Assembly (NCBI GenBank): GCA_002269645.1
Contig: NIVC01000151.1
Coordinates: 1 to 64,000 of the forward strand
Source of the DNA: Macrostomum lignano
Lineage: Eukaryota
DNA: 64,000 nt
Reading direction: 5' to 3'
Shown here: piece by piece, positions 31,584-64,000 of the stretch
Layout of the letters: every line of letters begins with the position of its first letter
How positions within the stretch are numbered: position 1 is the stretch's first letter
Notes under the pieces: generated by a model
What the model saw: only the letters and a program-made list of their open reading frames with translations
Databases searched by the model: none
Told to the model about the DNA's origin: nothing
Translations under genes and position numbers: made by a program

Positions 31584-36308
<4,725 letters not shown>

Positions 36309-40400: not shown

Positions 40401-40781
40401 GCAATTGACGGAAAGACACAAGAATAGATATTCAGTTTTGAGTGCGTAGTTGTCTTCGCTACGAGCGCTAAGACTGAAATTGTAAAATTGTTTAATTTCA
40501 TTTCGTACAATAATCCAAGGAACGATTCCTGGAACGGACTTCTTAAAGATTAGGAACAGCCGACCATTAAAAAATGTAAAAAAAAGAATAGCGAGAGCGA
40601 GAATAGTGCACTCAAGTCACAATAACACATTCATGACATTATTATTCTTGTTGTTGCTATCCTTGCTACTTCCTCGTTGCTTCCACACTTTAGAAACGCA
40701 TAGGAATCCCGTAATTTCTGGGTATTTCTTCGTTCCTTGTTAAACTTTAACACCTTGTTCATCTTTTGGTGAAAAAAAATT

Positions 40782-41865
40782 AGACATAGATCGGCTATGC
40801 TATTGTTTCTGTTTGCGTTGCTACAATCGTATGTTTTCGTAATTCTGTCTATGTGCTAAAGTATTGCAGCGATTGAAAGTACCCAAGTTAGTAGACAGGA
40901 GTGTGAGACAACTTTTTGGCTTTATTGAAATAAATCTGAATTCTGGGCTCGTTCCTGGCCTCACCGCATGTAATTGCTTCAAGCGAGTCATCACAATGGC
41001 GTCGCGGCTCGACACCTTAAACCTCGCGGAGGCAGACCGCGCCTTAACCTGGCTGAAAGCTTTCAAAGCTCTTGCTCGCTCGAAGAAGTGGGAAGATTCA
41101 GAATCGTCTAAAACGATTGCCGACAACTTTCTGGCCTTGTGTGGACTGGACACACTTGAGAAGCTAACTCATATTGTTGCGCCGAAGGAAATCGAGACGC
41201 TGCTATTCCAAGAGATTGAAACTGCGATCATCAACTATTTAAAGCCCAAGAAGTCTTTTATAATAGCTGAGCGCACGATGTTTTTGGCCTTCGCCAGGCA
41301 GCTGGTGAGTTCATCACGGATTTTCTATCCCTCCTGCGCAAGGCAGCCTCTCGATGCGCCTTTGACAACCTGAAGACTTACACAAGCCCGGAGGACGAGA
41401 TGGTGAGATTGGCGCTCATCGCGGGAATCAGCGATCCAGAAGTTCAGAGGCGCGTGCTGGGTGCAATTCAGACCTCGACTGGCGTGTCTGGCGGAGAAGG
41501 ACAAAGGCAAACGAAGGAACTGCCAATCTCGGATATTGGGAACCCGACCGCTACATGCCATAGAATCGGACACGTCCCAACGAACCAGTTTAATAACTCA
41601 CTATGTTGTATCACAGACTACTCTAAGCTCAGATTAGAGCCACGTGTTCAGGCTCCCAGACGCTTTCCCCAGTTTATAATCGTTGTTACATGTATAATCT
41701 AAGAAGGCTTTCTCCGGAGGGGGCATGACATAGATCGGCTATGCTATTGGTTTTATTGAAACACTTGAAAAGTTGAGACAACTTTTTGGCTTTATTGAAA
41801 TAAATCTGAATTCTGGGCTCGTTCCTGGCCTCACCGCATGTAATTGCTTCAAGCGAGTCATCACA
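40782..41865 (+). mobile_element. Small non-autonomous Ty3/Gypsy LTR element (gag only, pol deleted)
   Basis: 5' LTR 40782-40995 and 3' LTR 41726-41865 (TG...CA) share both ends (GACATAGATCGGCTATGCTATTG; GAGACAAC...GAGTCATCACA). PBS-like TGGCG overlaps the gag ATG at 40996; PPT GGAGGGGG precedes the 3' LTR. Gag motifs FLALCG, IVAPK, YLKPKKSFIIAER, LIAGISDPEVQRRVL, with a frameshift near 41290-41330. Confidence 0.85.
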
Positions 41866-42241
41866 TAGGAATCCCGTAATTTCTGGGTATTTCTTCGTTC
41901 CTTGTTAAACTTTCACACCTTGTTCATCTTTTGGTGAAAATAAAAATAATTATTATGAACACGTACATAAAAGGCTGTATTCACTAGACTTTAATTTCTA
42001 TTCATGTATTATCCAGATTGCTTCAGAAGAAAAAAGGCCACTAAAACCATAGACACACATTCAAAGCGGCCTTTTAGAATTCTGCCAGTATTTGCAAGTG
42101 TAACATCCTGTGTTGTTAGGTAGTCCATGTATAGAATCTGTGCTCCCAGACGTGCTTCAGTGCCTCATTTTCATATGGTCTAGCGAACAAGTGAGATGAA
42201 ATAATTAATTTTCTACCCTGGACAAAACAGTTATCACGCAC

Positions 42242-43751: not shown

Positions 43752-44075
43752 GTGTGGAACGTGCGGAAGAAGCAGAAAGAGCATCAAAAGAAGAAAGAAG
43801 AACCAAAGAGGAAAGAGGATCCAAAGAAGAAAAGTGATATAAAGAAGAAAGAGAAACCAAAGAGGAAAGAGAAACCAAAGCAGAAATGGGACCCAAAGCA
43901 GAATGTGGATCCAAAGAAGAAAAAGGATCCAAAGAAGAATGGTGATATAAATAAGAAAGAGGATTCAAAGAAGAAAGGGGATCCAAAGCAGAATGGGGAA
44001 CCAAATCCGAAAAAATATCAAACGATGAAGGCCGAACAAGGAAAAACCGGAAGCCAGGAAAGAAAGAGAATCTAA
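43752..44075 (+). other. Lys-rich low-complexity ORF with degenerate 18-bp (6-aa PKKKED-like) repeats, function unknown
   Basis: PKRKED, PKKKSD, PKRKEK, PKQKWD, PKQNVD, PKKKKD, PKKNGD, PKQNGE. Confidence 0.4.
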
Positions 44076-45006
44076 ATAAGAGTCCGGAGTGAAAGAAGAA
44101 ATTTGATCTAAAAAGACCGAACTGCAACAGAAAAAACAGGACGGAGATGCAGCAAGTAAAAAACGAAGCCTAACCGAAATTCTTTAAGATTTGTCGTACG
44201 AGTGCCCTAATCATGTACTGAAGGTAACTTGATGAATTAATTTTCTTCTGAGAAATATTTCAGAACTATGATGCTCATTTTTGTTTTACTTCAATCAGTT
44301 GCACTGCGCACACGAAATATTGCTGGTTTCTATTGGGTTTTTGTCACTTCTACATGCCTACTTCTGCCTTGTTGTTTGGTCAATAGTAAATGAAAAATGA
44401 ATAATTGCATAATGTAAGTAATAATTGATAATGGAATTGTTAATAAGTTGAAAATTGAACATTTAAAATTTCTAAGACAATCAGTGAACTTAAAAAAGTA
44501 ACACTTATACACTTGAAAAGATATCAAAGGGTATCAATGAACCAAAGGGGGTAGTGCGTAAAGTATTTAAAATCGGACTTAGAGGAAACTTTTAAATGGC
44601 TGTAATTTTGTGGAGCCGCATGTCCTTGAATAAAACAGAAGTCAAACTGAATATAATTGTTGTGAAAGGCCGGATCGTAACCTGAACTAATTCAGCAAAC
44701 GAGCACAGAAGATGGCGTTAGTCAACTGGCCGAACTGACTTCGGACTCCAAGCGTGGAATCGCGTCACGAGACTTTGTCAGCCGTCCCTATGGCGCAATT
44801 CGAACCCAGCCAAACCCGCAAATAAATAAGAGACGCGACTCACTCTTTGACTTGACACAGCAGTGACTGTGGCGGCGGTAGGGGCGGACTCTCCAATTTG
44901 GACAGTGAATGCTTTTGAGTACATACTGATTTTTTGCTCAGTTACTGGCGATAGTATGCAGAGTCTAGATCGGCACGGAGGGTGGTCTCCCATACCGCCG
45001 CACACG

Positions 45007-45008
<2 letters not shown>

Positions 45009-45036
<28 letters not shown>
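45009..45036. repeat. (TA)n microsatellite
   Basis: About 14 TA units read directly. Confidence 0.95.
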
Positions 45037-45037
<1 letters not shown>

Positions 45038-45400
45038 TGCACTAGCTGGTTAAGTCCCAGGGTATTGCTACGCCAGGCCCAGCTAGCCAAAATTACAAAA
45101 TTCACAACTTGCAGAACGCGACGGTCGTGATTGGAGAAAAATAGCAATCTAATTGATCGGCTGGGCCGCCAGCCAATCGCGGGGCAAGCGAGGGGGAGGG
45201 CGCGCAGAGGGCGCAGCCAGCCAAAGCAGGCTGGCCCAGACAGGCAGTGGGGTGGGTGGCGCGTACACAACTGTCTAAACAACTAAAGGGGGAAAAGCGC
45301 AGTGACGGGTGCACTGACTGCAAGCCCGAGATGGCTAGACAGTGCAGATGCACCCCGACACAAAATAATCAAGCACTTACTGAAACTCGTTAGTGTGCCG

Positions 45401-48400
45401 TTAAGCTGAAGCGCTGTCACTTTGGTAATAGTTTTTGAAGAAATCTGGCTTGCTCGTGTCGAATCCCCTGGCAGAGAGCTCCTCCGGATCTCGGGAAATC
45501 GGCACCAGAAAGGCGGGGCCCAACATGACGTCAGCGCTGGAGAAGGTGGCCCGCGCGATGACGCCCTCGATGCTGGTCACTCCGGAGGGCCCGATGATCA
45601 CGCGAAGCTCGGACCGACGCGCCAGTGGCTGAGTACGGCTCATGTAGCTCTCCAGCTCCTGCGGCAGATGGCTGGGCAGTTTCTTCCGAATGGCCGAGGT
45701 ACTCGCAGGAATGCTCGTGCAGCTGCTCAGAAAAGACCGCTGTGCTTCTCTGGCTTTCTGAAAGCAATCTTCTGAATCTTCTGAATCTTCTGGATCTTCT
45801 GGAACTGCGCATTCCGAGCAGACATTCCTGAAGTCTCGCCAGCTCCGGCTTCTATCCGAGACATCATCAGATGCTTGGAACTCGAGGTTAAACTCAGCCT
45901 CTGCTGTCTTCATTAACTTCTCAAACTCCCGTCGTGATTTGTCAATACTCGGTAAAATAAAGTCGCAGTTAAGCTGAGTGGGCACTGTGTCCATTGCCCC
46001 CCGGATTTCTGCCTCGGCCGAGCGGCATTCTTCATCGAACTTCTGCCAATCCGGATCGGAGGCTTTGGTGCCTCCCATTCGTTCGCAGGCTGTGGCTGCA
46101 TCAGAGTTGAAATCGATTGCAGCTGACTGTTGGGGCTCGCAAAGGGCCCTAGTTCTTTCGGTGCTCGAGAATACCTGAGCTCCATTCGGGGAGCAATTTT
46201 CTTCAGACAGTTGAAAATACTCAATGCTAGCAAACTCGAGAGTTATTGCAGAAGATTCGGCTATTCTCATCGAAATGCCTCGGACTGGGTTTGGTTTTGG
46301 AAAGCTTGCGTGCGCATCAAGTTTTATCTCAGCGCTTATAAAATCTTCAAAAGATTGCTGGGCGCTGCTATTTATCTCAACCGTACCAACCAATCCGAGA
46401 TGCTGGGTGTACTTTCCATTGTTTCGCTGCAAATTTTGACAGTCCAGTTTAATTTGGGGAGCTTCTATTGTGTATTCCTGTAGCGCAATTGTACCATTGT
46501 TTGCTATCAAAGAAATCGGCTTGATGGACGTCAGGCTGCTGTTGCTGATGCTGATTGATGAAGAAGATAGGGTTAAACCGAATACCAGAGCAAGTTCAGT
46601 GCTTCGAATATCCAATTCGAGGTTAGTGCTCAGCCAGAGGAGCTCTCTGCACTGTAAGTTCGATTCACTGAGAAAGCAAATCAAGTTTTTTGTATTCAAA
46701 TTCGAACAGTCTATTTGCAGTTGCTCAAACTTGCAGCTTTTTGCACACTGAAAAGTTGGCATGATTTCGGAGCGTACGAGAAAATAATTGGCTGAGACTC
46801 CGGACTTCACTGAGATTTGGCCTTTGGCACAGGCTGTCAGTTGTGAGCTCACAGTCGTGTCCTCCAAGTGCAAATGTCAGAGCATTCTATTCGAAGCGAC
46901 TCGCTGACTGAAGTATGACTGTCGATTCTGACGCATCTTGATGCTATTTGCAGGTTTCCGCCAATCTGGCATCGACTGAGGTGCGCATTGCTGGCCGCGC
47001 TTATCGAGGATGTCGAGGATCCGTCCTGTACGTCTGCGCCCGTCAGCGTCAGGCGATGGCTCTCCAACTTGAACCAGCTAAGCCTTGGGCTCACGAGTTC
47101 CAGCGTTGCTTGCTTTCCGAACGACTGAAGACACTCTGTGAACTGACAATCGGCAATTCGCAATGAGCCAGACACAAATAAATCGCAGCTCTTGGACACC
47201 TTCGCCTTCTCGATGAATCCGGTGCAGCAGCGTAGTGTCAAGGATGCACATAACACTGGATCTTTCCATTCGCAAGACTCACAGTCAATAGTCACATCTA
47301 AGTCAAATCGGTTTAACTCCGTTGCTTTGAATGTACGGCACTTTAGTATTGATTCGCCATTGAATATGCAATAATCGCCGAGTAAAATATCCCGAAAGTC
47401 CAATATTTGAAAGGTAGATTCCGTTACGACACTTTGAATCTTTGCGATAGCTATGCAATTGTATTCGCATGGGACTTCTGGCGAAATAAAAACTGACCCA
47501 AATTTAGAGTCTGAGATCCACACGTCCCTTACTTCAGCTATCAGCTCCTGCTGAACGCCTGTTCCATCAGCTAGGACCAGAGTGTCGCATGAAATTCGGA
47601 CTCGATTCAATGAAGAGTTCAGCACGGACAGATTTCGCACAGAGCCAATAAGAACATGGATGAATCCTGCATTGATCGCACAGTTCAGAGGATCTGCGTC
47701 CAATAATAGCTCCGGGGCGACAAAATTATCTAGCTCAATCTTATTAGCGGGCAAGACAACGGCTTTCTCAACCGTCACCCGAGCAAGTTTGAATTTCTGG
47801 GGTTTCTTGATCACTTGCAATCGAACGATTCGGATATCACTTACACAAACCGATGCTGCTTCACCGCACGTACTCGAGTCAGAGATCACCATAAGCTCTT
47901 TAGAGTATCCTTCATTCTTCTTGTCTGGATCTCTGCCATCTAGCTGAAGCCTCCTTGCTTGTACTTGCAAGCGATTTTGAACCATTACACCGCGTATTTC
48001 CGCCTTGATGGCTTTGAGCAGGAGGTTCGCGATGAACGCGCAACCAGTAACTCGTGCCGTACCAGTGACTTCCGCTTGCACTTCCTGAAGACAGCAGTCC
48101 AAAAGCTTCAGTTCCCGAGTCTTCGTCCAGATCTGTGCATGTTTTACCTCCTTGAGTTCACAGAATTCTGAGTCGCTAATTCGGATTTTATCAGAACTTG
48201 TGTCGGACACGCTCACGATGGGGCTCTGAATATCGACATTCGCTTTGACCATGCAGCCCTCCAATCGGACACGTGCGTGAGCCCGAATGATGCCGAGGTT
48301 AAAGACGCACTCCATCAGGCGAATTTCTCTTCCGGCAGCATCTATCAAGTTGATTCTCGATATTGTGTCCAGCAACACAGTGGGTCCGGGCTCGGTTTCA

Positions 48401-51400
48401 GCAGCTCGAATAAAGAAGTTTTTCTGGAGTCCGCACGTGGTGGAGATGCAGCAGCGCCGACACTGGGATGTAATCTGACCAACTTCAGAGTCACTGACTG
48501 CCAAAATGCCTTCTGTCTGCACCTGTAAATTATGCACACTGCAGTTTGATTTGATTCGTACATCACCCGAAATGTTTTTAAAGACGGCATTTTCCAAAAC
48601 TTCTATGGAACTAACTACCACGAAGAGGGAATTCAAAATGGTCAGCTCTTCTGCCTGTAGTTCCATTAGCCTCACTCTCAGCAGCCCGCATTCAGCGCCC
48701 CGAATAACGACAGAGCATGTGGCGAAGCACTGAGAAACTCGGGCTGAGAACACAGCTGTCAGCTGCAGATCCGACAGACACTGGCATCCGGACACGCACA
48801 ATCTGCCCGACTTCAAATGACTAGGGCCGGCAGAATTGAGGTCAGAAACGAACAGACGGAAGTTCCCCGTGTCTATACTTAGACTTCCCACTATGATTTG
48901 ACGAAGTGCTGCATGGCCTTTGGCGGCAATGCAAGCACCGCCATTAACGATAAGTTTACTGACTTGCAGTGAGGAATCAGTCAGCAGATTTAGTTGCCCC
49001 AGCTGGCAATCTTTCAAAGTAGTTGAGCCTACAATGACAGCATCACAGGAATTCGTAATCATCAGCCTCTCCAATTTGGTATTTCCTCCTGACAGGATCA
49101 TGAGAGAATTTGCGCTGGAATCGGACATTGTGAGCATGCGACAGAAAATCTCCATGTTCCCCTCCACTTCGCACGTTCTCACTGTAGATCCCACTGAGCA
49201 GTGGCGAAGTTTCATTGAGCCCAGGTAACTGCAAAATGAATGCGCGGCTTCGGACCAAGCAATGAGATTATCTGAGACACTTGACTTTGACAGGCGGAAG
49301 CATTCGTCAGCATCTGCATAAATCTGCTTTGCCTCTGTCTGGAACACGCTTAACTGCTTGCCCCTGAAGAACAACCGAACAAATTTGCTTTGCTTTGAGG
49401 CAAGTTTCCGGCACAGAGCCACGAAATCATTACTGACCATCGAGCTCTCAATGACGATTTCACCTTTGCCCGGACAAATTACTCGAAGCTCCGAAAGCAT
49501 GGTGCCTTTAATGCTAACGCAATTGGAACATACGACCATCTTTTCAGTAGCGTAAACATTTATTATTGCGAGAGATTTTCCGCTCACGCAGATTGCAGTT
49601 CCGAGGTCTGTCTTAGCCGTATTGCCTGAAATCTCCAAATTGTTGCCTGAGCGAGCCGTCAGGTCCATAATACTGGAGTCGCTTATTGTAATGGTTTCTG
49701 TAGCAACAACCTCTAATGTTCTCGCCGATAAAAAGGAAGCCTTGAAATCTGAGCAAGCCACAGATATATCTTGTGCTTTGAGTTGGTCAATGCTCAGTGT
49801 CTGGTGTACTCTGCATTGTAATTTCTCAAGGTGGCAACCGGCAGTAATAGTAAGCTCATTGCAAACATTAGCTACGAAAATATTATGCACTTTCGATGAT
49901 CTGAGTAACAGGTTGCGTGTAATCAGACAATGCCAATCGACAAAAGAGCACTTCAGCGTCTGGCAAAAGTCGCTCGAAACAATGCAGACTTTTATTTTAG
50001 AAGACTCCAACTTTATCCTTCCCATGCCGGATTTCTCAAAGGCCAGCAGGTGCGCATGCTTTGTAAAAATTAGCTTCGCATTAAATTCTTCTGTACATCT
50101 TACCTCCAGTGCTTTGGTAATTATACTGTTTTCTATACTTCCTGATTCAGACAGAAGGTGCATTTTCCAGGCAGCTGCGTTAGTCACCGTGGCATTCACA
50201 GCCGAAATCCAAACACCAGTCTCACCAAGGAGTTCGTCAATCACCAGACTCTGATCAGTCGACATCAGCATGGTCTCTGCAGACCAGATTCCGTGTGCTT
50301 CGATTACTCCACCCCTCAGAGTGACTGAGCCCTCGCTTGATGTCAAGAATCGAACTCTCAATTGTTCATCCGCTAAAATGTGCACATCTGCAGTGCACAC
50401 AAGCCAAGTTGTCAGCTGTTCGGACCACAGCTGAACGCGGACAGCCTTGATGAGGACTCCGTCCTTTACCGATATGGACCCATCGCAACGCCAGAATTTG
50501 CACTCGTGCATTATTTTCGCCGCTTCTATTCGAGTTGGCCCCACCAGACACAGCCAGTGGCTGCGTTCGAAAATTCCTTGAAGCTTTAGCGGAAGCCAGT
50601 CGCTGTGGCATAATTCTTCCCAGAAGGCGATTAGTTCTTCCTCTGGCTCAGGCGAGCCTTCTCTGACCGCAGTAGTGAGCTTCGCGACTAAACAAACAAA
50701 TTCATCCATTGAATTTTGCTCAGGGCTAGAAGTCCGGATTCGTTTTAGCGTCTCTGCCAACCATTTAGTGGCAGTGGAGACGAGCTGTGCACACCGCTTG
50801 TGATCTTCTAAAAACATTTTTACCGATTCGAGCACCATGAATTCAAATTGCTTTCGCATCTCGCTGTTTGGCTGGGGGACAGCTGTAGAGTTGGCACCCA
50901 GGCATTTTTCAACGTTTTCACGACTCGCGCTTTGTTCGCCAACTTTAGATTCGCCTGTTGTGCACACGTGCTCAGCAAAGCCGAAGTGAGAAATGTTCTT
51001 GACTGCTATTGTGGGGCTGTGTAGTTCGGCATATATAGACAACATGATGTAGCAGTTCAGCTGCAATGAGCTTTTTGCTGAAATTATCGCTGGGTAGAAC
51101 TGATCCTCGCTGCTCGAGCACATGTGCATCTGAGCGGTAGCATCGAGTCTGACATCTTTTGCACTCAACGTTCCCTGATTGTGCAGCAGCTGAGATGCAG
51201 CAACGGACAGCGATCTAAAGCAATCCACCCTCCCGGTCACAACAATACTTTCCGCTTGACAATCAATGCCACCCGTATCGTGTACGGACGCCTGAAAGTA
51301 AATGAATCTGCTTCTTAGATTAAAGTTACCGCAAAATTGTACTTTGCTGCCTAGTTCAAAACTGGCGTTTTTCCAGGCGTGAATTTCAAGTGTATCAATG

Positions 51401-54400
51401 TTGCGAATCTCGGAACCAGTTTGCAGGGTGAACTCCTGAGCACAGATTTTTACTTTAGCAGTGCTCACTTCATAGCTTCCCACTAGCGATTCGTCGAGTA
51501 CAACGCCCTGAGGGCAAATGATTTCAGTTTTTTTAAGAGCGACCTGCTCAACGTTTTTTACAATGAAGCGTGCCTGGTTCAGCTTGACTTTGCTGGTCTC
51601 CCAGGACAACCGGCGCACAGATTTTATAGCCATTAACTCAGACACTGAAAGGGTTGCAGACTTAAAATTGCATGTACCTTCGCATCCCCCAATTAGCAGA
51701 AGTTTCCCTAAATCAATTTCGCTCTCCGGCAGAACCGTGGCAGTTTTGAAGAATTCGATCAGCATCAGCGATGGCTGATTGCCGTGAACGATGCGACCGC
51801 TTATTGTGCATTCGTTGACATGCAAAATGAGATTTGTCGAGCTTTCACCTCCGAACTGAATCAATCCACGACAATAAAATTCATCCGCGTGTACCACTAT
51901 CGCGGCACGGTCTTCATCTTCCAAAGAAGCGAAAAAACTGCCTTCAGTCACGACTTCCTTTGCCAGAATTGTCACGTGTCTCAGACGCAAGAGGCGAAGA
52001 ACGGCCGCATCACAGAGTAAAAGTCTACGAGCTCTCACAAGGCAGCTGCTTGCCCCAACGAACTCCGCATTGCCACTAATCTCCAGTTCAGTCTCACAGT
52101 TTACCAGAAATTCTCCGCACACGCTTTGCTGGCTTTGAACGGTCAAGTCCTGTGAAATCGACAGCTTCTGCACCATAATCTGGCTTGGCATATCCATTTC
52201 AGCGGCCATTTTCAGCTCAAGACTGATTTCAGACCCCATAAATTTGTTGCATTTTAATTTTGACCCTTGCTGACCTTCAATTACAATTGCTTTAGCATTT
52301 CGGTTCTGCCGGTCGTTTACGTGGCTGATTAACAAACAGCCCACCGTTATTTTCTCCAGTTTCGACACAGTCAGCTTTATCTCCGAAGCAGACGGGGACG
52401 GCTGAACGAGGAGTGTGTCGCAAGTGACGCTTCGCTGCAGTTCAATTGATTCAGAAGCTCTTAAGTGAAGAAAAGTTTGCTCAGGCGAGCACACTTTTGA
52501 ATGAAGTGCTACGGACCCTGACAAGCATTGGAAGCTGGCGCCGTTCATTGGAATTTGCAGTTGCAATGGCTGGCTGTGAGATTTGGCGTGGATATGCAGC
52601 ATATTAGAATTTACTGCTGTGCACGAGCTGCGAACCAGCTTGTACATGGCCCTCGAGGTAGCAGCTTTCCTGTGGCCCTAACCAGGCAATAAAGACGATT
52701 CCATGGTCTGATGCAATGCTCCCAGCTGAATTATCAATGTCTCCGGACTCGATGATTAAATCCGTGTGGCTGTGAACAGCACCAAAATTAGCTATGAAAT
52801 GTGCACTGATCACCAAGCTTCCGTTAGCGGACTTCAATTTAGTATTCGACGATATTGTAAGATGCTTTCTTGTCAAAACTGAAATGGAGTCATGTACTTC
52901 AAGGTTTCTGTCTAGCTCACAATCACTGTCTAAATCAATGCATAAGGCCTTCATTCCACTTATCATTCCTTTGTTAACAAATCGGTTTCCCCTTATGTAT
53001 ACAGACGCTCCATGCTCTTCTCTTGTCTCACGACCTGTTTCACCTTTCTTGCAAAGCTTCAGGCTGCCTTGGTGAGTGAATTTAGTCCCGATGAAGATGC
53101 TCAATTCGCGAGTAAAAAACTCCCATACTGATCCGCTTTGTGTTTGAGCTTTGTTTAACACGATTTCGATGCTATTCGCGCAATATTCTTGACTACACTG
53201 TGGAGGACACAGCAACTGGCTCTTAGGACCAAAGTTCACTGTTGCAGCAGGAATGACAATGCCCGCGCACTCCATGCTGCAGTTTAACTCTACGTCAGGT
53301 CCAAAGCCACAGGTTCGAAGCCAGGAATGTACAACAAGTGGTCCTTCAATTATTTTAATACTTCCTTGCAGCGAAATATGACCAGCTGGACTATAAATGA
53401 CACCTACCAAAGACTCCATGGCCTCAACTTCAGCCTGAAGCGCAAGCTGAGCAAATGCGCAGACAGTGACTCGGTAGCCACCCAGCCTGCCAAACACGGA
53501 CTCACTTGGTCTCCTTGTGGTAATTTGAAGCTCAGCTTTGTTCTCCTTCTCAGAATAAGCAGCCGCATTTATACTCTGTGAGAAACTTTCAATATCCATT
53601 GAGAACTTCTTGAAGCTGTTGTATATGCATCCAATGTTTTCAAGACTACCTACTACTCTTAATGAACCGCCATTCACTAACCACAATTCTGCCCCTGCTT
53701 GGACTCTGCATTTTCCAACCTCGAATTTATTCAGCTCTTCTATCTTGACTTCTCCTTGGACATTGAGCCTACCGCGGCACCAACCGCTGATTGACCCACT
53801 TTTCCATACAGACCTTTCTTCGACAAACGCATCCCCACCAATTTCAAGATGAACTTTTGCACCCAGAAACTGGCTGAGGTTGGCAACATCCTCACTAACA
53901 AGACAGCAGATACTCTGTGACTGGTATTTTCCCTTACTTTTTGCCTCCCACTTCAGGAGTATCGCGTTCCTATTGAGTTTATTCTTTTCAGCGACACCCG
54001 GTGGATTCGGCGCAGTTCCCAGATCAGCAATCGCCTTTCTGAGCTTCGCAATGGCGCTTTCACCTTTTTTGTCTTTGAATGTAGGATCAGCCCCAGAAAA
54101 TAGCAGCTTTTTCACTGCTGCAGAATCACCTGTGGACGAATCGATCAGTTGCTTGTCGGCGTCTCTCGCTTTCCTTTCAGCCTTGCTTTGCTTGCCAGCG
54201 TCACTGAGGTATCTTGACACACGAGCTGCAGACTCCTTGCTCGATACTGGAGAGCGAATCTGCTTTGCCGAGATTTCTATCTTGTGTTCAGCAAATACGA
54301 CTCCAACATTTGTTATGCCATCAGTACTGATCAAACTTACTTCTTTGGCCTTTTTATGCCGGTCCGAATATCCGATTTTTGCATCCATTTTTACTACAAT

Positions 54401-54790
54401 ATTTCCATTAACTCGAATGGAAAGGCTGCCATCAGCTTCCTCAGTTGAACAGGGAAGCGGCAAGATGCTGCCAAACACAATCAGGCTGGATGACACCTCC
54501 CGGATCGTTGATTCGCATAGCAACTGCGAGCACTGAACAACTGAGCTTTCTGCCACCACAACTTCTGAAGAAAGAAGTTTTATTTTGGACCCTCGCATGC
54601 ATCTAGATGAGATATTAATTCCCTTTGTGGACTCCAAGACCAATCGGTTAAATTCCTGCTTGCAGTCGGCCACCGTGATCTTTGTCGAACTAATTTTGAT
54701 ATTATCCGAGATTGTCATGCCTAATACTGCCAAAGACACTTCTCTTCTTTTTTTATTTACTTCGACATTGCAGCTCCATTGTTCCTTCCT
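45401..54790 (-). CDS. Giant exon (~3,130 codons) of an uncharacterised beta-solenoid-like protein with FHA-like motifs and one ankyrin-like repeat
   Basis: ORFs 52604-54850, 46849-52647 and 45401-46873 overlap by 44 and 25 nt and join by single-base frameshifts, the second in a T run (ATT TTG needed, ATTTG seen). A strong minus-strand acceptor TCCTATTTCCTTTGCTACTCCTTTCAG precedes 54790 in phase 0. The central 1,932-codon frame is stop-free. Confidence 0.85.
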
Positions 54791-56018
54791 CTGAAAGGAG
54801 TAGCAAAGGAAATAGGACGATTCTGAATTGAGATGACACAGCATACGCACTACACATTAATCTACAAGGGTATAGAGAGACGGTTAAATGCAGCACGAAC
54901 TCACTGTTTACAAACTAAAACGCAAATCAAACACCCTTCTTCTACATCCCACGTGTAGATCTGATCTGGAGCGAGTGGGTATGGGGAGTAAAAAACACAA
55001 AGAACTCAAGGTCTGCATTGACGAATTTTGATTGAACACAACCGCGTCATCTTATCATATACTGGGAGCTATAGAGCGCCCGTTCTATAAAACAATGCAA
55101 GTTGAAACGCTCGGCGGAATTGCAGCACACAGGGCGATCAGGAGAATCGCAAGCAAAGAGAAAACTGCTCACTGTTCGAAGTAGTCCCAAACTAACTTAT
55201 TGTCCGCTCACAGCGGTTTGAGAATGATAGAATCGCATCTCAGTATTTGGTTACTCAAGCCATCTAGCGCGATCTCATGTCTATTTTGGTGAAGGTGGAA
55301 GATGGCAGGGAACGAAAACATATTCTTGGTACAGATACTTTCTAGTATGGATAGCTAAGGACTCTTCATTTGCAACGGCGCACCGTGAGCCGAGAACTAA
55401 AAAATGGCGCATAAACTCCTATTTCCCGGGAAGAGAGGAATGACGTGTGTAGACAATAGACCAAAAAGCATGTCTGGCCACCGTATTGCACTTGAGTCGC
55501 ACCTAACTGTTCCTCAGTAGTTTTGTTTGAAAATTCACTTGGAACCTTAATGGAGAAAAAATGGAAGATAATTCGTTTTTTCATTAATAAGATGAGGAAT
55601 GAGCGACTCTTGCCTCCCCCGCTGTCCTTGGACCGGCCTGCAGCTAGGAGCCTGCTATACACTGCTTGCACTTGTTCAGGACGATTTGCAACGCGAACCA
55701 CCACCAATTGCGCCAGTGCAACACGAGAGAGTAAAGTACGCTCGTACAATACAAGCCTTATGCATCTAGGCTAGCTAGCCTCTAGCCTCAAGCTTTAAGG
55801 AAAGGTATGAATAAGCCGACTGGCATCACAGGATCCTATATACAAAAATGAGTTGTCTGTATGTATGTGTGCTATAGATTTCAGAAAAATAATTGACTAA
55901 AATTATTGTTCTGCATCTAGTGAGCTTGCTGATTACAGTGAGCTTTTGACCTAAAGTACAGGCGGCACCTTGAATTTGAAAATGATGTAAATCAAAATCT
56001 CTTCAAAAGTGGTCTTAC

Positions 56019-56240
56019 CTCCTCATGGCTCCTCCTAAACTTGACAAACCATTTTTCGACTTCCGCGTGGTTTGTCTTTTGCTTCTTGCTCGCTTCTGTC
56101 CATCTACTGGACGAAAAAGAAGGAGGTCCTTCCAAATCAAAGACGAGCACACTTTCCAGGCTTCCATTCTGCCTTGTGGATCTTTTGTTTTTGACTAGAA
56201 AGCGAAAATGGTGCTTTAAGTCGTGCCTGTCGTCGTTCAT
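56019..56240 (-). CDS. Putative first coding exon (74 aa) of the giant minus-strand gene
   Basis: ATG at 56240; the ORF reaches GAG|GTAAGA after exactly 74 codons (phase 0), matching the phase-0 acceptor at 54790. Intermediate exons are not excluded. Confidence 0.5.
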
Positions 56241-57322
56241 TTGAAGTTTTAGAGAAAATATGTCAGAAAATCTTATCTGACAGTAGATTCATGCACCTGT
56301 TAGGGAAGGAGGTTCTAGGAATCTAGACAACTTCACTTATTGTGGCTCAGCTAAGAGGCAGAGTGCATGCAAATTCACTATACGAAAAAATTATCCTTTC
56401 TTAAAAGGTGAGAAAGTTTCATCTGTACCTGCAGTCGGTCTACGCTCGTACTGTTCAACAGAAAGAGAAGTTCAGTTTTGTGTGCTCATGGACCCGAGGA
56501 GGCGGGCCATTTCTGCGTACATTTTGCAGTGTATTACACTATAATTGCGTACTTACAGTGCGCTAAATTTCTAACCCATGCTGTTTGTTTTTGCAGTTAC
56601 CTTCTACAAGGTACTAATTCTTGCACCATCGCAAATATGAGATAAAGTGGACTGGTAAGTAAGACATTTATAAATATAAAACATTATAAAAAAATTCTCG
56701 TTTAATCACTGCTTAAAAATCTTGATCCTGGTTGCTATACACGTCACATGCCCAAAGGTAAGAAAGAAACGTTATTGCTTTGTGCAAGCATATAATGTAC
56801 TCGCATGTGATTTGAATTTATAACTGAAGCTCCAATATGGAATTTGACTGCATACTAATAGCTCATAGGCTGTTGGTCACTGTGATTTTATTGCTTACAA
56901 AAAAACTACATTTTTTATACATTAAGTTTCAATGCGGGGATTCAAACAAACTACTGCAATTGATAACTTGTCAGACCAGTTGACTAGAATTAAACCAGTT
57001 AGTGTCGAGACTTCCCACCAAAGTCCCTTCCTTGGGGTCCCATTGGATAAAAAGGATAAAATAAGGATTTTCGTAAGCTAGAATGAACTGGCTCTAGAAT
57101 GAAGCTCGAAGGTCAGCTCCAGACCAAAGCGCCTGCTATCGATGGCTTACCCTTCTCCAGTAGCGAATGTGGGCAGCAATCAGGGTGTGGAAGCAAACTT
57201 CTCGTTAACGAGGTACGAGCTCGTAGAACGTGGAACATACATTCTCCATTTTTTGCTGCTTTTAGTGTCCGTGCGTTTTTTGATTTGCTTCAATTTAATA
57301 ACAACTGCATTAACTTTGCAGC

Positions 57323-60300
57323 ATGGGCAACACCGGGAGCAAGCTCTGTAACGACACAGAAGAGGACTGGAGCGTGGCAGCGAAGTACAAGGTGATAGGA
57401 GTTGGTGCTGGATCCGAGCTCATCAATTTGCCATCTGGTAGATCAGTTCATTATGACTACGAAGGTCTACCGGTTAACATTTACTTCAAACACGGAATGC
57501 ACGGTAAACACGAGACCATTCAAAACCCAAACATGCAGTCTTGGTGCAATGGGATCAGAAACAAAGAATGGAAGCTGGATTCACCGGCAGAGGGATTTAT
57601 TCATCTGAGCTATGACGGCAAACAGGAGGCAGAATATAAATATGAAACGAAGTCTATGTTTGCTGACAGGAAACGCAGAGAGCGGGAGCAAAGAATGCAA
57701 ACAGCTCGAGAGCAGCTGAAGCAGAGTGACAGAGAACGGACACTCTTTGACGAAAGAAAGATAAAAGAGCAGAAGATCAGCAGGATAGGATCCTAGAAGA
57801 AAACAGAAAAAAATGGGAGGCGTGGAATTCAGAAAGAAGCAGGGCATTAAACGCATTCAGCCGCAGAGAAGATAAGTTCAAAAGAAGGTGCCAGGAGATG
57901 CAAAAAGACAGGTTAGGCAGGCAGGCTGAGAGTTCTTCCCAGCAGAATAAGAATCGAGAAAAGCTTTTCTCTCAACTGCAGAAGCAAAAGACAGACTGGA
58001 AAACTAAAGGCCAACAGGATTTTCTGGAGGAAAAAAAAGAGGTGGAAAAGATTCGAATGGAAAGACTGGAAAGCTTTCGGCACCAAAAGGAGCGGATTAC
58101 GTCAGAGACAAGTGCAAGGTTTAACAGCCTCAATGCGGAAGCTGATCAACACAGAGCTCGTCTGCAAGCGCAGTTTAAAGAAAGGAAAGGTCGCTTTCAG
58201 AGCGAGATGCAGAAGAAGCAGATTGAGATGGAAGAGCATAGCTTGGAGATGAAGAAGAGACTGCAGTCGCAGCAGGAGGAGCTTGAAAAAGGAAGAAGAG
58301 AGTTCGAAGCTGAACTAGCTGAAAGGGAGGCCGATATCGCCAGAAGAATTGAAGAGCAGCGAGCAAAGATAAGGAGAAATCAGCAAGCGTCTGAGAACCT
58401 ACAGAAAACAGAGAAATTTGGACGGCAAGTGGCAACAGCAAGGGAAAACCATAGAGCAAAAGAAATGCAGAGATTGTTCAAAGGCTTGAGAGTCTCGATA
58501 CAGCATGTGCGCGGCAAGTGTGCAAAAGACTATGCAAGCCTTGGAGTTTCCGATGCTACTGTTGCAGATATCAGGAGCCAAATAGATAAAAGCATTGAAA
58601 ATGCTGTCGGAGATGTTTTTACCCGTCTCAAAGAAGCAAGTCAGAATGCGAGTGGTCAAAATGCTTTGAGAACTGTAGAAGCCGTTTCAAGATCGCAATT
58701 CCTGAATCATTTTCGTAGTCATTGGAAGTCACGAATTCCTCAGCCCAATAAAGAGAATCAAATGGCGACACACTTGTCGCTTCTTAAGCTTCTAGATGAA
58801 GAGTCGGCTGGCCAAGTGCTAGACGCTGCAAACAAGGTTCTCATAGAATTTTGCTTTCCGAAAACAGAAATCGACATGGTGTATTATGGCTTGCTGGTTT
58901 TGCTTTTTTTTAAAGAAAAATCCGCTGAAGACCTTTTGAACGAAGACGAGTTGGATGAACTTCTTCATCAGTTCCGTGACACAAATTGTGCCATACAACA
59001 TCTGGATAAGCTGCTAATGGCAAACAATCAGGATGAGACTAATCCTGTCATAAAAATTCTGCTGAAGCTACTCTTAGTGGCTGAAGATATTACTCGACTC
59101 TGGCCTGTCCAGAAAGCAGACACCGACTTGAAGAGACTTCGATCCGTCGTGACAGCAATGCTGAAAACTGCTGGCATCGCTGACTATCTGGATAAGAAAT
59201 CGGACACCGAATGTGTGGTTGAGCTCATTCTGTCAATGCAGCACTGGGATTCTGCAAGCACGCTCAAGCTAATGGAGCTCATTCACTCTAGTGACTCGAC
59301 ACCTGATCAAGTAAGACAGGTCGTCCAGATGATGATTTTGAGCCGCTGCGATTTAAAAGGTCTTCTGGATTCCAGCGAGACTATTTCAAAGGCCACCATT
59401 GAGCGACTTGAAAAGGATCAGGCAGCACAGAGGACTCTCGGCGAACTTCTAGCTGAACTTAAGGAATCAGGAGGATTTGAAGAGGATCAGCTTTTCAAGC
59501 TTGAAGATGTCGTCAGTAAAACCGCGAAATATTTTGATTTGTCCGGATTTGGCAAAGCAAAAAAACTATCGCCGAAAAGCTTAGCAAAATCAAACTATGG
59601 GAGCGTGGAAAGGAACCACCATTGCACAAAATTTTGATTGATCTGTCAAAGGCAGTGAGAAAATGTAAAGGATATCTTCCGAGGAACACACAGCTTCTCA
59701 GTGCTGCTGCCTTGCTCAAAAGCTCTGCTAGCAAGAAATTCGGACAAATTTTGCAGATTCTGACTGGCGAAGGAAAATCGTGCATTGTGGCAATGACCGC
59801 CGTCGGACTTCTGCTTCTCGGGAGGACGTCAGTTGACGTCGTTGCACCCTCTGAAGTTCTGGCTGAAAGAGACTGCCAAGAATGGCATGATTTTTATAAA
59901 GAATGCAAAGTTACCGTTAGCTGCAACATTAATCATAAAAAACCAAAAGAGTGTTATGAGTCCAAAATAGTGTATGGCACGGTGTCTTCATTTGCAGGTG
60001 ACGTTTTGCGGCACGAGTTCCAGTTTAAGGAAATTCGTGGCACAAGAAGCTTCGACGCAGTTATTGTGGATGAGGTCGATTCACTGCTGCTCGACCAGGG
60101 AGTGCAGCTAACGTATCTTTCTCAGGATGTGGGAGACATGAAAATTCTGGACCCAGTTTTTCCGACGACCTTTAGATCCCTACTTACTTTCGGCTTTAGT
60201 AAAGTTATTGGGTACTTAAAATCATCGACAAAGTTCGGAGCGGTGGCGAAAAATATGAGTTCAGTTGGAAGTAAACATTATTCCAAAGCTGGATCTTTGG

Positions 60301-63205
60301 TCACAAAGTTGGTTGGAGAAAATACTGTAAAAGTGCTCAAAGGTATAGTAGACAATCCCGTGTTTAAGTTTTTAGCAGACTTTGCTGTAACTGATGCTCA
60401 AAGACGGCTCATTGACAGTTTAATTTCTAAGTTAAAGAAGAATGTTGAAATTGATATCGAGGGAAAGTGCAACGAAGAAGCCCAGCGAGGAAGGCTGTAC
60501 GACATTGTTGTTCGAATAGCAGCTCCCATGTGCGTGCAGAAAAATCAAGCGACGGAAAAAATGAATGTATTAGATTTCTCCATGCTTACTCCGGAACTGC
60601 AAACCAATGTATTGAAGGCACTTAAAGAAGCCACGGAAGAGGCAGCACACAAAGTTCTGAACGATGCAGAAGCGATGGAAAAGGTCATGGATACAATAAA
60701 GTCATATCTGAGCAATTTAAACTCTGAATTAGCAGAACACTTTAAAGGGCTCCTAGTTTTCCTCAGGCTGGCAGCCGTAGCGGTGGATGCTGCAGCCATC
60801 GGAGTGCAGGCTGAGAACTTGAGAACTGTCGTTGGCAGCATTGTAAAAAAATATAGATTGTTTTTTAATTGACGGAAGCGACGATTGGGAAATCAAGTAC
60901 GACCCTAATCTCAAGCTAAAGGAAAAGAATATGAAAAATGTGGAGCAACTCAGCCAACTGACAAGCAAAGTCGGGCAGCAAATGCGGTCGCAAACCAGCG
61001 AAGTAGTCAGTGCTATACTAGAGGATTATTTAAGAAAGAGCATAGGAGACATGACAAGCCAAGCCGTAGATCAAGCCAAGAGAACTCTCTCGAAAACATT
61101 ATCAACTGCTAATAAGCAAAACAAGATGAATCATTCCTCCATGCCAAAAAAATACACACAGCAAGGAAAAAAACCGAGGAAGCCTAACGCATCAAAGGAC
61201 ACCAAAGTGGAGTTGTCTGGAGATGGCATCAGATTAAAAAAAGCAGGATCAGCTAAAAGTTAAAACAACAGATGATGACTTCAGTTTATCGGTACAACGC
61301 AACGACACTCAATTAGGCATCACGCACGGATCCATAGGAACGGAAGCCAAAGTAAAAAAGGGAAAACATAAAATAGCAGCAAGAACCAATGAACAAGAAG
61401 TTGCGTTAACCCTAGGCCACGGACAATACGAAGTCGAGGCCGGCGGAGGCGAACAAACCAAGCAAATCGGGATATACAAAAAGGAAAAAGAAACCAAAGA
61501 AGGAGCTCTAACAAAAAGAAAGTCCACCTCAAGACAAGGAATACACCTATCTAAGGACGAATCAAAAACCAGTTTTGCCTTTAAAACAGAAAATCAAACT
61601 ACACACAAAAACCCAAATCACAATAAAACTGAAAGAAAATGCGTAAGCGCAGGACTCCAATTCGAACAAGCTGGCACCAGTGTCGAGCTCGCGCAGTCGG
61701 ACGAGAAACGACAGGCCGAGTCAACTAAAGACGGCGACAGCAAAGAGCGCTCGAGTAAGCAAGAATCTAGCGCCAAGCTCGGTCTTGGACAAGCTGGCGC
61801 CAGTGTCGAGCTCGCGCAGTCGGACGAGAAACGACAGGCCGAGTCAACTAAAGACGGCGACAGCAAAGAGCGCTCGAGTAAGCAAGAATCTAGCGCCAAG
61901 CTCGGTCTTGGACAAGCTGGCGCCAGTGTCGAGCTCAAGGACTACTCAAGTAACATATATATAGGACGCAACACTCAAAATCTATGGTAAATGTTTTGAA
62001 GGCAACTTTTCGCCGAAAAATACACTACAGAGATAGGAGGTTTTAATTTTTTTAGCACAAACATTGTTATTGCTTTTGATAAGAGACAGATCCAGTGTTC
62101 ATCTTTTGATATGTTGTGCCTTTCTTATTGCTCTATCGATATTCATAAAGCTTTTCGTTCGGAAATAGTTTTAAAGGCAGGTTTCACCGGAAAAACACAC
62201 TACGGAGATGGGAAATTTCACGATTTTCAACACCAAAACAGTGATTGGGTCTCTCAACAGTTTCAGAGAAAGTCTTTTTGTGCCTCACATGCTGCTCTAA
62301 CGACGCATCAATCGATTTTTCATGTTAAATTGTTCTTGTCATTGTTTTAAAAGTTTTTTCAAGTGACAGACCAATTTAACATGAAAAATCGATCAATGCG
62401 TCATTAGAGCAGCATGTGAGGCACAAATAGTGTGATTAGGACTTTCTCTGACACTGTTAAGAGACCCAATCACTGTTTTAGTGTTGAAAATCGTGGAATT
62501 TCCTATCTCCATAGTGTATTTTTCCGATGAAACCTGCCTTTAAAACTATTTATAAACGAAAAGCTTTATGAATATCGATAAAGCAATGAGAAAGGCACAG
62601 CATATCAAAAGATGAACACTGGATCTGCCTCCTATCAAAAGCAATAACAATTTTTGTGCTGAAAAAATGAAAACCTCCTATCTCAGTGGTGCATTTTTCG
62701 GCGAAAAGTTGCCTTCAAAACATTTACCACAGATTTCGAATGTTGCGTCCTTCTACTTAAGTTGTCCTTGGTCGAGCTCGCGCAGTCGGACGAGAAACGA
62801 CAGGCCGAGTCAACTAAAGACGGCGACAGCAAAGAGCGCTCGAGTAAGCAAGAATCTAGCGCCAAGCTCGGTCTTGGACAAGCTGGCGCCAGTGTCGAGC
62901 TCGCGCAGTCGGACGAGAAACGACAGGCCGAGTCAACTAAAGACGGCGACAGCAAAGAGCGCTCGAGTAAGCAAGAATCTAGCGCCAAGCTCGGTCTTGG
63001 ACAAGCTGGCGCCAGTGTCGAGCTCGCGCAGTCGGACGAGAAACGACAGGCCGAGTCAACTAAAGACGGCGACAGCAAAGAGCGCTCGAGTAAGCAAGAA
63101 TCTAGCGCCAAGCTCGGTCTTGGACAAGCTGGCGCCAGTGTCGAGCTCGCGCAGTCGGACGAGAAACGACAGGCCGAGTCAACTAAAGACGGCTACTTCG
63201 GTTAA
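57323..63205 (+). CDS. Eukaryotic SecA-DEAD-like ATPase-domain protein (~1,680 aa reconstructed), interrupted by a foldback insertion
   Basis: MGNTGS start right after an intron (57213-57321); long E/K/R/Q coiled coil; PRNTQLLS...QILTGEGKSCI...VDVV...LAERD...IVYGT...FDAVIVDEVDSLLLD. ORFs 57323, 57898, 59622, 60931 and the ATG-less frame from ~61240 link through four single-base shifts in A runs (~57763, ~59560, ~60848, ~61238). Confidence 0.82.
61665..63193 (+). repeat. 123-bp (41-aa) coding tandem repeat, ~5.6 essentially identical copies, split by an insertion
   Basis: Unit ASVELAQSDEKRQAESTKDGDSKERSSKQESSAKLGLGQAG; ~2.2 copies before 61936 and ~3.4 after 62770. Confidence 0.95.
61936..62770. 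mobile_element. 835-bp foldback/MITE-like non-autonomous DNA transposon with an 8-bp TSD
   Basis: Starts CAAGGACTACTCAAGTA and ends TACTTAAGTTGTCCTTG. Arms 61936-62344 and 62360-62770 are imperfect inverted repeats around a 15-bp spacer. TSD GTCGAGCT at 61928-61935 and 62771-62778. Confidence 0.94.
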
Positions 63206-63522
63206 TTTCGTTGAGGCCCTTTTTCTATTGAGTATAAGGTCGTTCAATGTTTTTCGGTTAACTGTCCTAGACCCGTTTGTCAAGTTTTTTTCGGTGGTGG
63301 ATGTGGTTGTTTTTTCGGTACAATACGTTTATTAGTGTTTTTTAAGACTTCCATTATGTTTTTACCTGGGGTATTAGTAAGCACTTACATTGCTTTTTAA
63401 AATTGGGTTTTAGTCGTAGGTATAGTTTTTTGGAAGTTAACAAGCTTGCATTCGGGGTTTCTGTGAAATAGATAAGTCATGTGCTAGTTACTTATGAAGA
63501 GATTTACGGTCAATCTGAGATG

Positions 63523-64000
63523 CATGAGGTCCGGCCAAAATGGAACGAGAATTTAGCTACAAAAAAATTCAGAACAAATTATGCAAATTTAGTCAACTAC
63601 AGCCTTCAAATTAATTGCGGCCACTTTCAACCCATCGCCTCAATCGCTAGTGCCAGCTCCTGATGCAGCCCTGGAAGCCCTCCTTCATGACGCCCCTCAG
63701 CACCCTTGTCACACTCTCCTTGATGGCATCCTAGTTTTGAAATCTGGATCCTTTGAGGACCTGCTTCACCTTGTTAAAGAGCCAGGAATCACACAGCGCT
63801 ATATCTGGTGAATAAGGTGGGTGGCTCAACTCTGCGACCTATCTTTTGGCCAAAAACTGTCTCAATGTCTCGATGTTTAATTGCAGTTTTTTCTGACCGT
63901 CAGTGAGGAACTTTGGCCCCATCTTTGACGCTCTCCTATCCATCCTGGAATCGCTTGTGCCACTAATACACCCTTGCCTGAGACTTAGCATCTTCTCTAT
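63523..64000 (-). mobile_element. Decayed mariner transposon, running off the window edge
   Basis: One minus-strand frame from 64000 reads ASKMGPKFLTDGQKK...HPPYSPDIALCDSWLFNKVKQVLKGSRF...WH*RLRRWVESGRN*FEG, with four in-frame stops and the catalytic core deleted. TIR-like TGAGGTCCGGCCAAAA at 63525. Confidence 0.85.

Follow-up and report, generated by a model that had tools for sequence, protein, structure and literature searches.

Two very large divergent reading frames in vertebrate-like DNA: a giant orphan gene and a SecA-like gene with NBD1 alone

Do two very large genes that lie head-to-head in a eukaryotic locus work together, or are they only neighbors? The question is raised by the 64-kb stretch of DNA analyzed here (contig NIVC01000151.1, positions 1 to 64,000; hereafter, the window), in which two sets of very long and almost intron-free reading frames diverge head-to-head at approximately 45 to 62 kb. 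The initial annotation had suggested that the pair may be a co-regulated module of a SecA-like ATPase and a haemagglutinin-like solenoid protein. We give about an even chance to another reading, namely, that the block holds two separate, lineage-restricted and essentially single-exon genes, or very recently inactivated ones, that are neighbors without evidence of functional pairing. Gene 1 (minus strand, ~3,150 codons) would then encode a soluble, cytosolic-looking and beta-strand-rich giant protein, perhaps solenoid-like, and gene 2 (≥1,300 codons on the plus strand) would be a diverged representative of a "giant SecA-like protein" family, within its vertebrate branch.

The description of the pair as two very large, nearly intron-free divergent genes holds, as the stop-free stretches lie on opposite strands and are far longer than expected by chance. 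On the minus strand, stretches of 750, 1942 and 491 codons (54856-45404) lead to a TAA stop codon at 45401-45403, and the probability of 1942 stop-free codons at the local composition is ~1e−46. The start codon proposed at 56240 is feasible, since the exon that it opens joins the big open reading frame (ORF) in frame: a phase-0 donor at 56018 pairs with the acceptor TCCTTTCAG/AGG (slashes mark exon-intron boundaries), and the next exon starts at 54790. This first exon is a candidate only, because an open frame of such length could be due to chance. The parts of the giant gene are as follows.

56019-56240, minus strand: candidate first coding exon, 74 codons (MNDDRHDL...SHEE), ending in phase 0 at the donor GAG/GTAAGA (56018)
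52607-54856, minus strand: N-terminal stop-free stretch, 750 codons, beta-rich except for an alpha-helical insert
46852-52677, minus strand: central stop-free stretch, 1942 codons, beta-strand-rich, without detectable homologue
45404-46876, minus strand: C-terminal stop-free stretch, 491 codons, beta-rich and ending in an acidic helical tail
45766-45801, minus strand: 9-bp in-frame repeat in four copies, encoding the acidic PEDPEDSEDSED motif in the C-terminal tail

The plus-strand gene is composed of five stop-free stretches (57314-57793, 57751-59634, 59538-60869, 60847-61260 and 61238-61987), and its ATG at 57323 stands immediately 3′ of an acceptor-like ...tttgcag. Under the model with the candidate first exon, the starts of the two genes are ~1.1 kb apart. 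Between the two starts, we detected neither a CpG island nor any other hint of a common promoter. The interval and the parts of the SecA-like gene are listed below.

56241-57322, no strand: interval between the two candidate start codons, AT-rich (34-48% GC), with splice-site-like motifs at ~56600-56660 and 57320
57323-57793, plus strand: start of the SecA-like gene, MGNTGSK and then a 157-amino-acid region with no assigned fold
57751-59634, plus strand: second stop-free stretch, 628 codons, ~300 amino acids of coiled-coil-like sequence followed by a helical region
59646-60197, plus strand: SecA-type NBD1, with Walker A TGEGKS (59763-59780), VYGT (59970-59981), Walker B DEVD (60069-60080) and LTYLS (60108-60122)
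60198-60869, plus strand: open continuation after NBD1, ~220 codons unrelated to the preprotein cross-linking domain (PPXD) or the second nucleotide-binding domain (NBD2) of relatives, with one hydrophobic segment, LLVFLRLAAVAVDAAAIGV
60847-61987, plus strand: tail stretches 60847-61260 and 61238-61987, K-rich and of low complexity, running into a 123-bp minisatellite

Two further statements about the composition of the pair were borne out. The GC content at third codon positions (GC3) is 0.45-0.54 in the giant gene and 0.43-0.54 in the SecA-like gene, compared to 0.79-0.94 in the flanking CDK14-like and DYRK2-like kinase exons (18983-21466 and 33284-35300), and both genes lack the minisatellites of the kinase introns: the region 45802-61665 contains no tandem repeats even at a Tandem Repeats Finder (TRF) score of 50, which leaves the 9-bp repeat listed above as the sole tandem repeat within either gene. 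GC3 of both genes is also approximately equal to the local non-coding GC content. The shared low GC3 fits a common recent arrival, weak expression or neutral drift, and it is no proof of joint function.

The identification of the plus-strand gene as a SecA-like ATPase stands for its first nucleotide-binding domain, NBD1, which is genuine and has intact Walker A and Walker B motifs, and fails for the rest of the motor. The ORF at 59622-60872 matches SecA_DEAD of Pfam (E = 8e−25, profile positions 67-218 of 290), and also DEAD and ResIII. SecA and SecA2 sequences of the PDB match NBD1 with E-values of ~1e−10 over ~150 residues. All SecA and SecA2 models of NCBIfam are matched with 40-65 bits, compared to curated cut-offs of 725-1493, over model positions ~48-214 of ~800, or ~20% of the SecA model. 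The matches are restricted to the first ~150-190 residues of the SecA motor. In an alignment of nine sequences (the window and eight relatives), 29 columns are invariant, and hence the NBD1 of the window holds all 29. The window also carries the NBD1 signature of the family (TGEGKS[CV][IVA][IV]AM, [VI]I[VI]DEVDS[LM], VYGT and LTYLS).

Beyond NBD1, the likeness to canonical SecA and SecA2 ends; it is confined to the first RecA-like domain, in fold and in motifs (Walker A and Walker B DExD). No PPXD was detected in the window with SecA_PP_bind of Pfam, and a PPXD/NBD2 profile built from six relatives reached a best E-value of 0.93 against the six frames of the whole window. NBD2 (P-loop_SecA/Helicase_C) had no match in Pfam or NCBIfam, and searches of the 64 kb with the NBD2 of relatives (tblastn, phmmer and hmmsearch) were likewise negative, although further exons might lie past position 64000. 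HSD, HWD and C-terminal SecA domains were not matched in the window, nor was a SecY partner context found for the gene. Because the motor past NBD1 is replaced by unrelated open sequence, the predicted protein has only NBD1 and cannot serve as a translocase of the SecA type. The proposed analogy with SecA2 proteins that move large repeat proteins is therefore not supported, and the giant ORF has no signal peptide or transmembrane (TM) helix.

What the gene would retain is a predicted N-myristoylation start (MGNTGSK, which we take to fit the consensus of PROSITE PS00008), a long charged coiled coil (50-66% E/K/R/Q/D in the ~300 residues upstream of NBD1) and an intact-looking NBD1, with unrelated open sequence in the place of PPXD, NBD2 and the C-terminal domains. 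If active, such a protein might be a membrane-tethered, oligomerizing nucleotide-binding switch or scaffold. Because the ~220 codons past NBD1 stay open, the NBD1-only architecture appears to be maintained as coding sequence, and not to be a simple truncation.

The relatives of this gene retrieved by protein search are a fish "protein translocase subunit SecA-like" (Poeciliopsis), hypothetical proteins of Crenichthys, Acipenser and Menidia, and products of some metagenome contigs. NBD1 of the window is 42-51% identical to the fish and fish-like members, compared to ~30% to SecA. The fish genes encode 2,000-2,600 amino acids in large, nearly intron-free ORFs (a single one of 2572 codons in Menidia), and family ORFs on metagenome contigs reach 4258 codons. 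Like the window gene, the genes of Poeciliopsis prolifica (P0002), Menidia menidia (P0008) and Acipenser (P0005) have the same NBD1 motifs, an ~800-amino-acid region before NBD1 and an essentially intron-free layout. Unlike it, the fish proteins continue with PPXD, NBD2, a TPR-like region, a glycine-rich hydrophobic region and a long tail, none of which is present in the window copy; SecA_DEAD, SecA_PP_bind and P-loop_SecA/Helicase_C are carried by the fish and the metagenomic relatives alike. Thus, a full NBD1-PPXD-NBD2 motor in a protein of >1,100 amino acids is found in the relatives, but not in the window copy. We detected no similarity between the N-terminal region of the window gene and those of its relatives, including the fish.

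Alignment-based scans for NBD1 yielded 80 metagenomic loci (32-48% identity) and 80 bacterial loci. At 34-45% identity, the top bacterial matches come nearly all from obligate intracellular bacteria, and the bacterial members belong to Rickettsiales, Midichloriaceae, Coxiellaceae, Rickettsiaceae, Wolbachia of Tribolium (wCon), Legionellales, Cardinium, Orientia chuto, Holosporaceae, Tisiphia and Francisellaceae. The ORFs that host the domain in these bacteria have 1,100-4,544 codons (3911 in Wolbachia, 3572 in Francisellaceae and, as the largest, 4544 in a metagenome-assembled genome [MAG] of an uncultured proteobacterium). As in the window, NBD1 is part of very large proteins with several domains; the bacterial ones are effector-like and, unlike the window copy, keep the full motor. 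One metagenome contig (Ga0172373_10001076, L046:1-13627) carries two giant SecA-like ORFs in tandem, one of which (3,147 amino acids) combines a CE-clan/Ulp1 deubiquitinase-type peptidase (ElaD/SseL/RickCE-like) with a complete SecA-type motor in an effector-like architecture.

We found no paper that describes the fish family or animal SecA-like proteins, and the giant "SecA-like" genes of vertebrates owe their names to automatic annotation alone. The literature that we found consists of mentions by the Aravind laboratory, which concern bacterial effectors and toxins: SecA-like domains related to helicases are noted in effectors of Amoebophilus (Zhang et al. 2012, PMC3482391), in agreement with the bacterial matches above, and giant actinobacterial toxins have SecA-like ATPase domains (Kaur et al. 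2021, PMC8195603). Papers on a Cardinium "DEAD-box helicase" were set aside as a description of the family, since they concern another protein.

In a neighbor-joining tree of NBD1 (176 columns, 200 bootstraps), the window, the three named fish and six further loci (L002, L003, L007, L008, L010 and L087) form one clade in 67% of the bootstraps. The bacterial members form clades separate from the window and the fish, and Bacillus subtilis SecA lies on a long branch apart from the whole giant SecA-like family, which supports an NBD1 family distinct from housekeeping SecA. Among the members of the fish clade, L087 (OZ219990.1, 24 kb, 39% GC) is labeled "chromosome 39" of a Stappiaceae MAG and is the top "bacterial" match at 45% identity, yet it groups with the fish. 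Its GC content appears low for Stappiaceae, and the contig is probably eukaryotic DNA that was mis-binned into the MAG.

The initial annotation had suggested a possible bacterial or endosymbiont origin for both genes and a phylogeny that includes bacterial homologues as a way to examine it. For the SecA-like gene, and at the level of the family, such an origin is plausible: the nearest bacterial members sit in giant proteins of obligate intracellular bacteria, because of which we consider an endosymbiont-type ancestry of the vertebrate or animal SecA-like family plausible and the giant proteins of intracellular bacteria its likely evolutionary source. A recent import of the window copy is not borne out, as its NBD1 groups, with moderate support, with the fish; the copy looks like a member of the vertebrate lineage and not like a fresh bacterial acquisition. 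This kinship to effector-type giants of intracellular bacteria points to old gene flow from bacteria to animals and to a possible role of the family in host-microbe conflict. To this family, the window adds a derived form, in which a predicted myristoylation start and a coiled coil precede NBD1 as the sole SecA domain.

The giant minus-strand gene is, as far as sequence comparison reaches, an orphan without a relative in any search. Word-indexed protein searches with its 1932-amino-acid ORF returned nothing, and neither did those with the N-terminal and C-terminal pieces. When 1,200 amino acids of the ORF were compared to 1.84 billion representative proteins with HMMER, the single match was spurious, to a bacterial protein of eight identical repeats. 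The profile libraries Pfam, NCBIfam, PHROGs and PADLOC had no match, and searches against viral contigs, bacterial and archaeal genomes and plasmids (tblastn) and against PDB sequences were empty, beyond a weak ankyrin-like motif at amino acids 224-268 in the helical insert of the N-terminal stretch (matches to ankyrin designs, E = 0.03-0.05). Bridge-like lipid-transfer proteins, AHNAK and PbH1, which are families with conserved domains, were considered as the identity of the ORF and dropped, as the expected domains were absent from the profile and HMMER searches. Such a 3,150-codon neighbor, without a relative among the representative proteins searched, would, if intact and expressed, be among the largest orphan proteins on record.

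As to its structure, the ORF has a clear period-2 alternation of hydrophobic residues, which is typical of beta-strands, and a weak lag-13 signal, with no consistent longer periodicity; BLASTP of the ORF against itself gave no off-diagonal matches at E-values up to 10. AlphaFold models of two pieces (801 and 321 amino acids), each predicted from a single sequence, consist almost wholly of short consecutive strands, with predicted local distance difference test (pLDDT) values of 36 and 46. Foldseek searches of the PDB with these models returned nothing significant (best E = 0.028, TM-score ≤0.27). Most entries in the weak, non-significant lists are beta-helix proteins (two-partner-secretion [TPS] domains, passengers of autotransporters, pectate lyases and left-handed helices of the LpxA/D type), and the TPS domains include those of HxuA, HMW1, filamentous haemagglutinin (FHA) and HpmA; since the models have low confidence, these lists are only hints. 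For the giant protein, HMMER, AlphaFold and Foldseek, which the initial annotation had advised for both proteins, thus gave low-confidence models of strands and neither a homologue nor a significant fold match. Of the "solenoid" assignment, the beta-rich nature survives, and "beta-rich, possibly solenoid" would be a fair description of the modeled protein; self-similarity and periodicity are lacking, and the models are of low confidence.

The label "haemagglutinin-like" is not supported. The N-terminal 750 amino acids have no match to a TPS domain (Haemagg_act, NPNL/NPNGI) in Pfam or NCBIfam at E-values up to 0.1-1. The proposed kinship to FHA and CdiA lacks support from family profiles, since no Fil_haemagg repeat was matched in the ORF (Pfam and NCBIfam), and from periodicity, since none of 19-20 residues was detected. 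Neither start model begins with a hydrophobic N-terminus, and no hydrophobic stretch of the ORF reaches the length of a signal peptide or of a TM helix. TpsB partners have ~550 amino acids, and there is no further ORF of >222 amino acids within 44000-64000. In sum of likeness, the giant ORF resembles TpsA-type exoproteins (FHA, HMW1, CdiA and ShlA) in its very large size and in beta-rich stretches such as "LISAHFIANFGAVHSHTDLIIESGDIDNSAGSI"; it differs from them in the absence of Haemagg_act/TPS, Fil_haemagg repeats, signal peptide, a nearby TpsB-sized ORF and a bacterial homologue.

Are the two genes intact? There are six frame changes, two in the giant gene and four in the SecA-like gene, and no in-frame stop codons. 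Neighboring stop-free stretches overlap by 71 and 25 nucleotides on the minus strand and by 43, 97, 23 and 23 nucleotides on the plus strand, because of which we read the frame changes as single-base insertions or deletions and not as introns. Introns as the cause were rejected after all frame-compatible GT-AG pairs at the six junctions had been listed: none is short or convincing, and all of them would excise long in-frame open stretches. At the second junction of the giant gene, a candidate 185-nucleotide intron (46852-46668) is itself open in the downstream frame. Homopolymers coincide with several of the changes.

52607-52677, minus strand: first frame change of the giant gene, 71-nucleotide overlap, no homopolymer
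46852-46876, minus strand: second frame change of the giant gene, 25-nucleotide overlap, with a donor-like GTGAGC exactly at the stop codon
59559-59565, plus strand: A7 run in the second frame-change interval of the SecA-like gene, within the overlap 59538-59634
60845-60851 and 61236-61242, plus strand: A7 runs adjoining the third and fourth frame changes of the SecA-like gene

Three of the four frame changes on the plus strand (three of six overall) are in contact with A7 runs, and the 4.6 kb in question contain eight runs of at least seven bases. The contact with A7 runs points to slippage, either real or as an assembly error. The pattern fits intact genes with indel errors of the assembly, or a very recent inactivation; if the genes are dead, we estimate a neutral divergence of ~0.2-0.9%, well under 1%, since then.

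Several observations weigh against two separate and possibly intact neighbors. The six frame changes could make both genes plain pseudogenes. The fish clade has no more than moderate support, which comes from 176 columns and neighbor joining. The shared low GC3, lack of introns and minisatellites, and divergent orientation could be explained by a common origin or by shared regulation. The missing homologues of the giant ORF may partly reflect gaps of the databases in close relatives, from which the proteins of the window are absent as well. Moreover, two-gene arrangements with a conserved, though unrelated, divergent partner exist in the SecA-like family, as described below.

The first of these points leads to the rival explanation that survives best, although we consider it unlikely: both frames could be recently dead pseudogenes, that is, decaying relics of foreign or mobile DNA that arrived between host genes by lateral transfer or as cargo of a large transposon. 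Six frame changes without an in-frame stop would fit the small neutral divergence estimated above, GC3 equals the GC content of local non-coding DNA, unlike in the host exons, the SecA-like copy lacks parts that every relative has, and hAT, mariner and a possible gag-like ORF make the surroundings rich in transposable elements. However, self-BLASTN found no repeats like long terminal repeats (LTRs) or terminal inverted repeats (TIRs) flanking the block inside the window, and no transposase flanks it there either; three of the frame changes lie at A7 runs, which are common sites of assembly errors; the codons past NBD1 are still open; and NBD1 keeps every residue that is invariant in the family alignment.

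The reading of the initial annotation, a co-regulated module for adhesion, defense or effector delivery, with the SecA-like ATPase as the exporter or handler of a giant FHA-like beta-helix protein, seems to us very improbable. It could draw on the head-to-head starts, which are within ~1.1 kb if the feasible first exon is accepted, on the low GC3 and absence of repeats that both genes share, and on the weak Foldseek lists, in which beta-helix proteins dominate, the TPS domains of HxuA, HMW1 and FHA among them. Those matches are all non-significant, however, and the results described above for each protein oppose the module: PPXD, NBD2 and the C-terminal SecA domain were not found in the window; TPS and Fil_haemagg profiles did not match the giant protein even at permissive E-values, nor did it show a repeat periodicity; and, without a signal sequence or TM segment, the predicted protein is not an obvious Sec substrate. 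Both genes, in addition, carry frame changes.

A further argument against the module comes from the neighborhoods of other family members; the initial annotation had named homologues that are never adjacent elsewhere as evidence against the pair. We searched 166 SecA-like loci (2.04 Mb from fish, metagenomes and bacteria, including six fish or fish-like loci with 10-kb flanks) with the giant ORF and with the parts of the plus-strand gene outside NBD1, and found no match. A relative of the giant ORF thus adjoins none of the 166 SecA-like genes, with the caveat that no homologue of this ORF was detected at all. Upstream of the fish genes, the flanks contain no large divergent ORF, and no giant beta-rich gene adjoins these genes. 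A conserved divergent pair of another kind, which favors a module to some degree, is present in an AT-rich branch of the family: at seven loci (L024, L027, L032, L037, L042, L044 and L050, metagenome contigs of 16-23% GC), the SecA-like gene has a divergent neighbor of ~1,140 amino acids only tens of bases away. This neighbor is 34-73% identical among the seven loci, helical, K/N/I-rich and without a Pfam match, and it is unrelated to the giant ORF of the window. The attractive reading of an FHA-like adhesin with its dedicated SecA translocase fails on testing, and such a module is not supported.

Even less probable, in our estimate, is that the block is laterally acquired symbiont- or parasite-type DNA kept in a vertebrate nucleus. 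Genes for a giant beta-helical surface or effector protein and for a SecA-like effector would have entered together, would have acquired introns at their 5′ ends and one divergent promoter for both, and would serve today as a host two-gene system, for example in defense or cell-surface biology; if true, it would be an animal system without a described counterpart. We give the lowest probability to an assembly chimera or contamination, in which the block at 45-62 kb derives from a symbiont or parasite and was mis-joined to the kinase region: composition changes abruptly, the block lacks repeats, unlike the rest of the window, and the SecA-like family is typical of intracellular bacteria, but NBD1 groups, with moderate support, with nuclear fish genes rather than bacterial ones, host-type minisatellites and transposable elements are present on both flanks of the same contig, both 5′ ends have splice-site-like signals, and the block contains no bacterial genes, with Rfam and tRNA scans of it being empty. 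We retain two separate neighboring genes, intact or very recently inactivated, as the preferred reading.

Outside the block, the window is eukaryotic and vertebrate-like, as judged from its exons and repeats. The DYRK2-like exon is 78% identical to human DYRK2, and the best human match of the CDK14/16-type exon is CDK16. The extreme GC3 of these kinase exons is of a kind typical of lampreys. Introns of the kinase genes are crowded with GC-rich minisatellites that are themselves open reading frames, because of which naive ORF lists are misleading in this region; TRF finds >20 minisatellite arrays in the window. The remaining elements are listed here.

9373-18604, no strand: 92-bp AT-rich satellite (32% GC), ~100 copies with 96% matches that fill 9 kb on the upstream side of the CDK14-like coding ORF that comes first (18983 onward)
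24789-25585, plus strand: decayed copy of a mariner/Mos1-type transposase in two frames, with HTH_48 and DDE_3 matches
26288-28783, minus strand: intact hAT-type ORF of 831 amino acids, with a hAT dimerization domain (E = 1.8e−8) and a long charged C-terminal tail
40864-41373, plus strand: ORF without a Pfam match, beside short duplications of 97-99% identity (40699-40995 and 41771-41945)
61666-61936 and 62771-63193, no strand: two arrays of one 123-bp (41-codon) unit, ~830 bp apart, with copies 99-100% identical

With a GC3 of 0.65, the hAT ORF stands between the two big genes and the host exons, and it could encode an active or domesticated transposase. The ORF at 40864-41373 presumably resembles the gag-like N-terminal region of LTR retrotransposons. 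The 123-bp arrays are open in several frames on both strands, and the first of them shares the reading frame of the SecA-like tail; as minisatellite DNA, the arrays probably do not belong to any protein.

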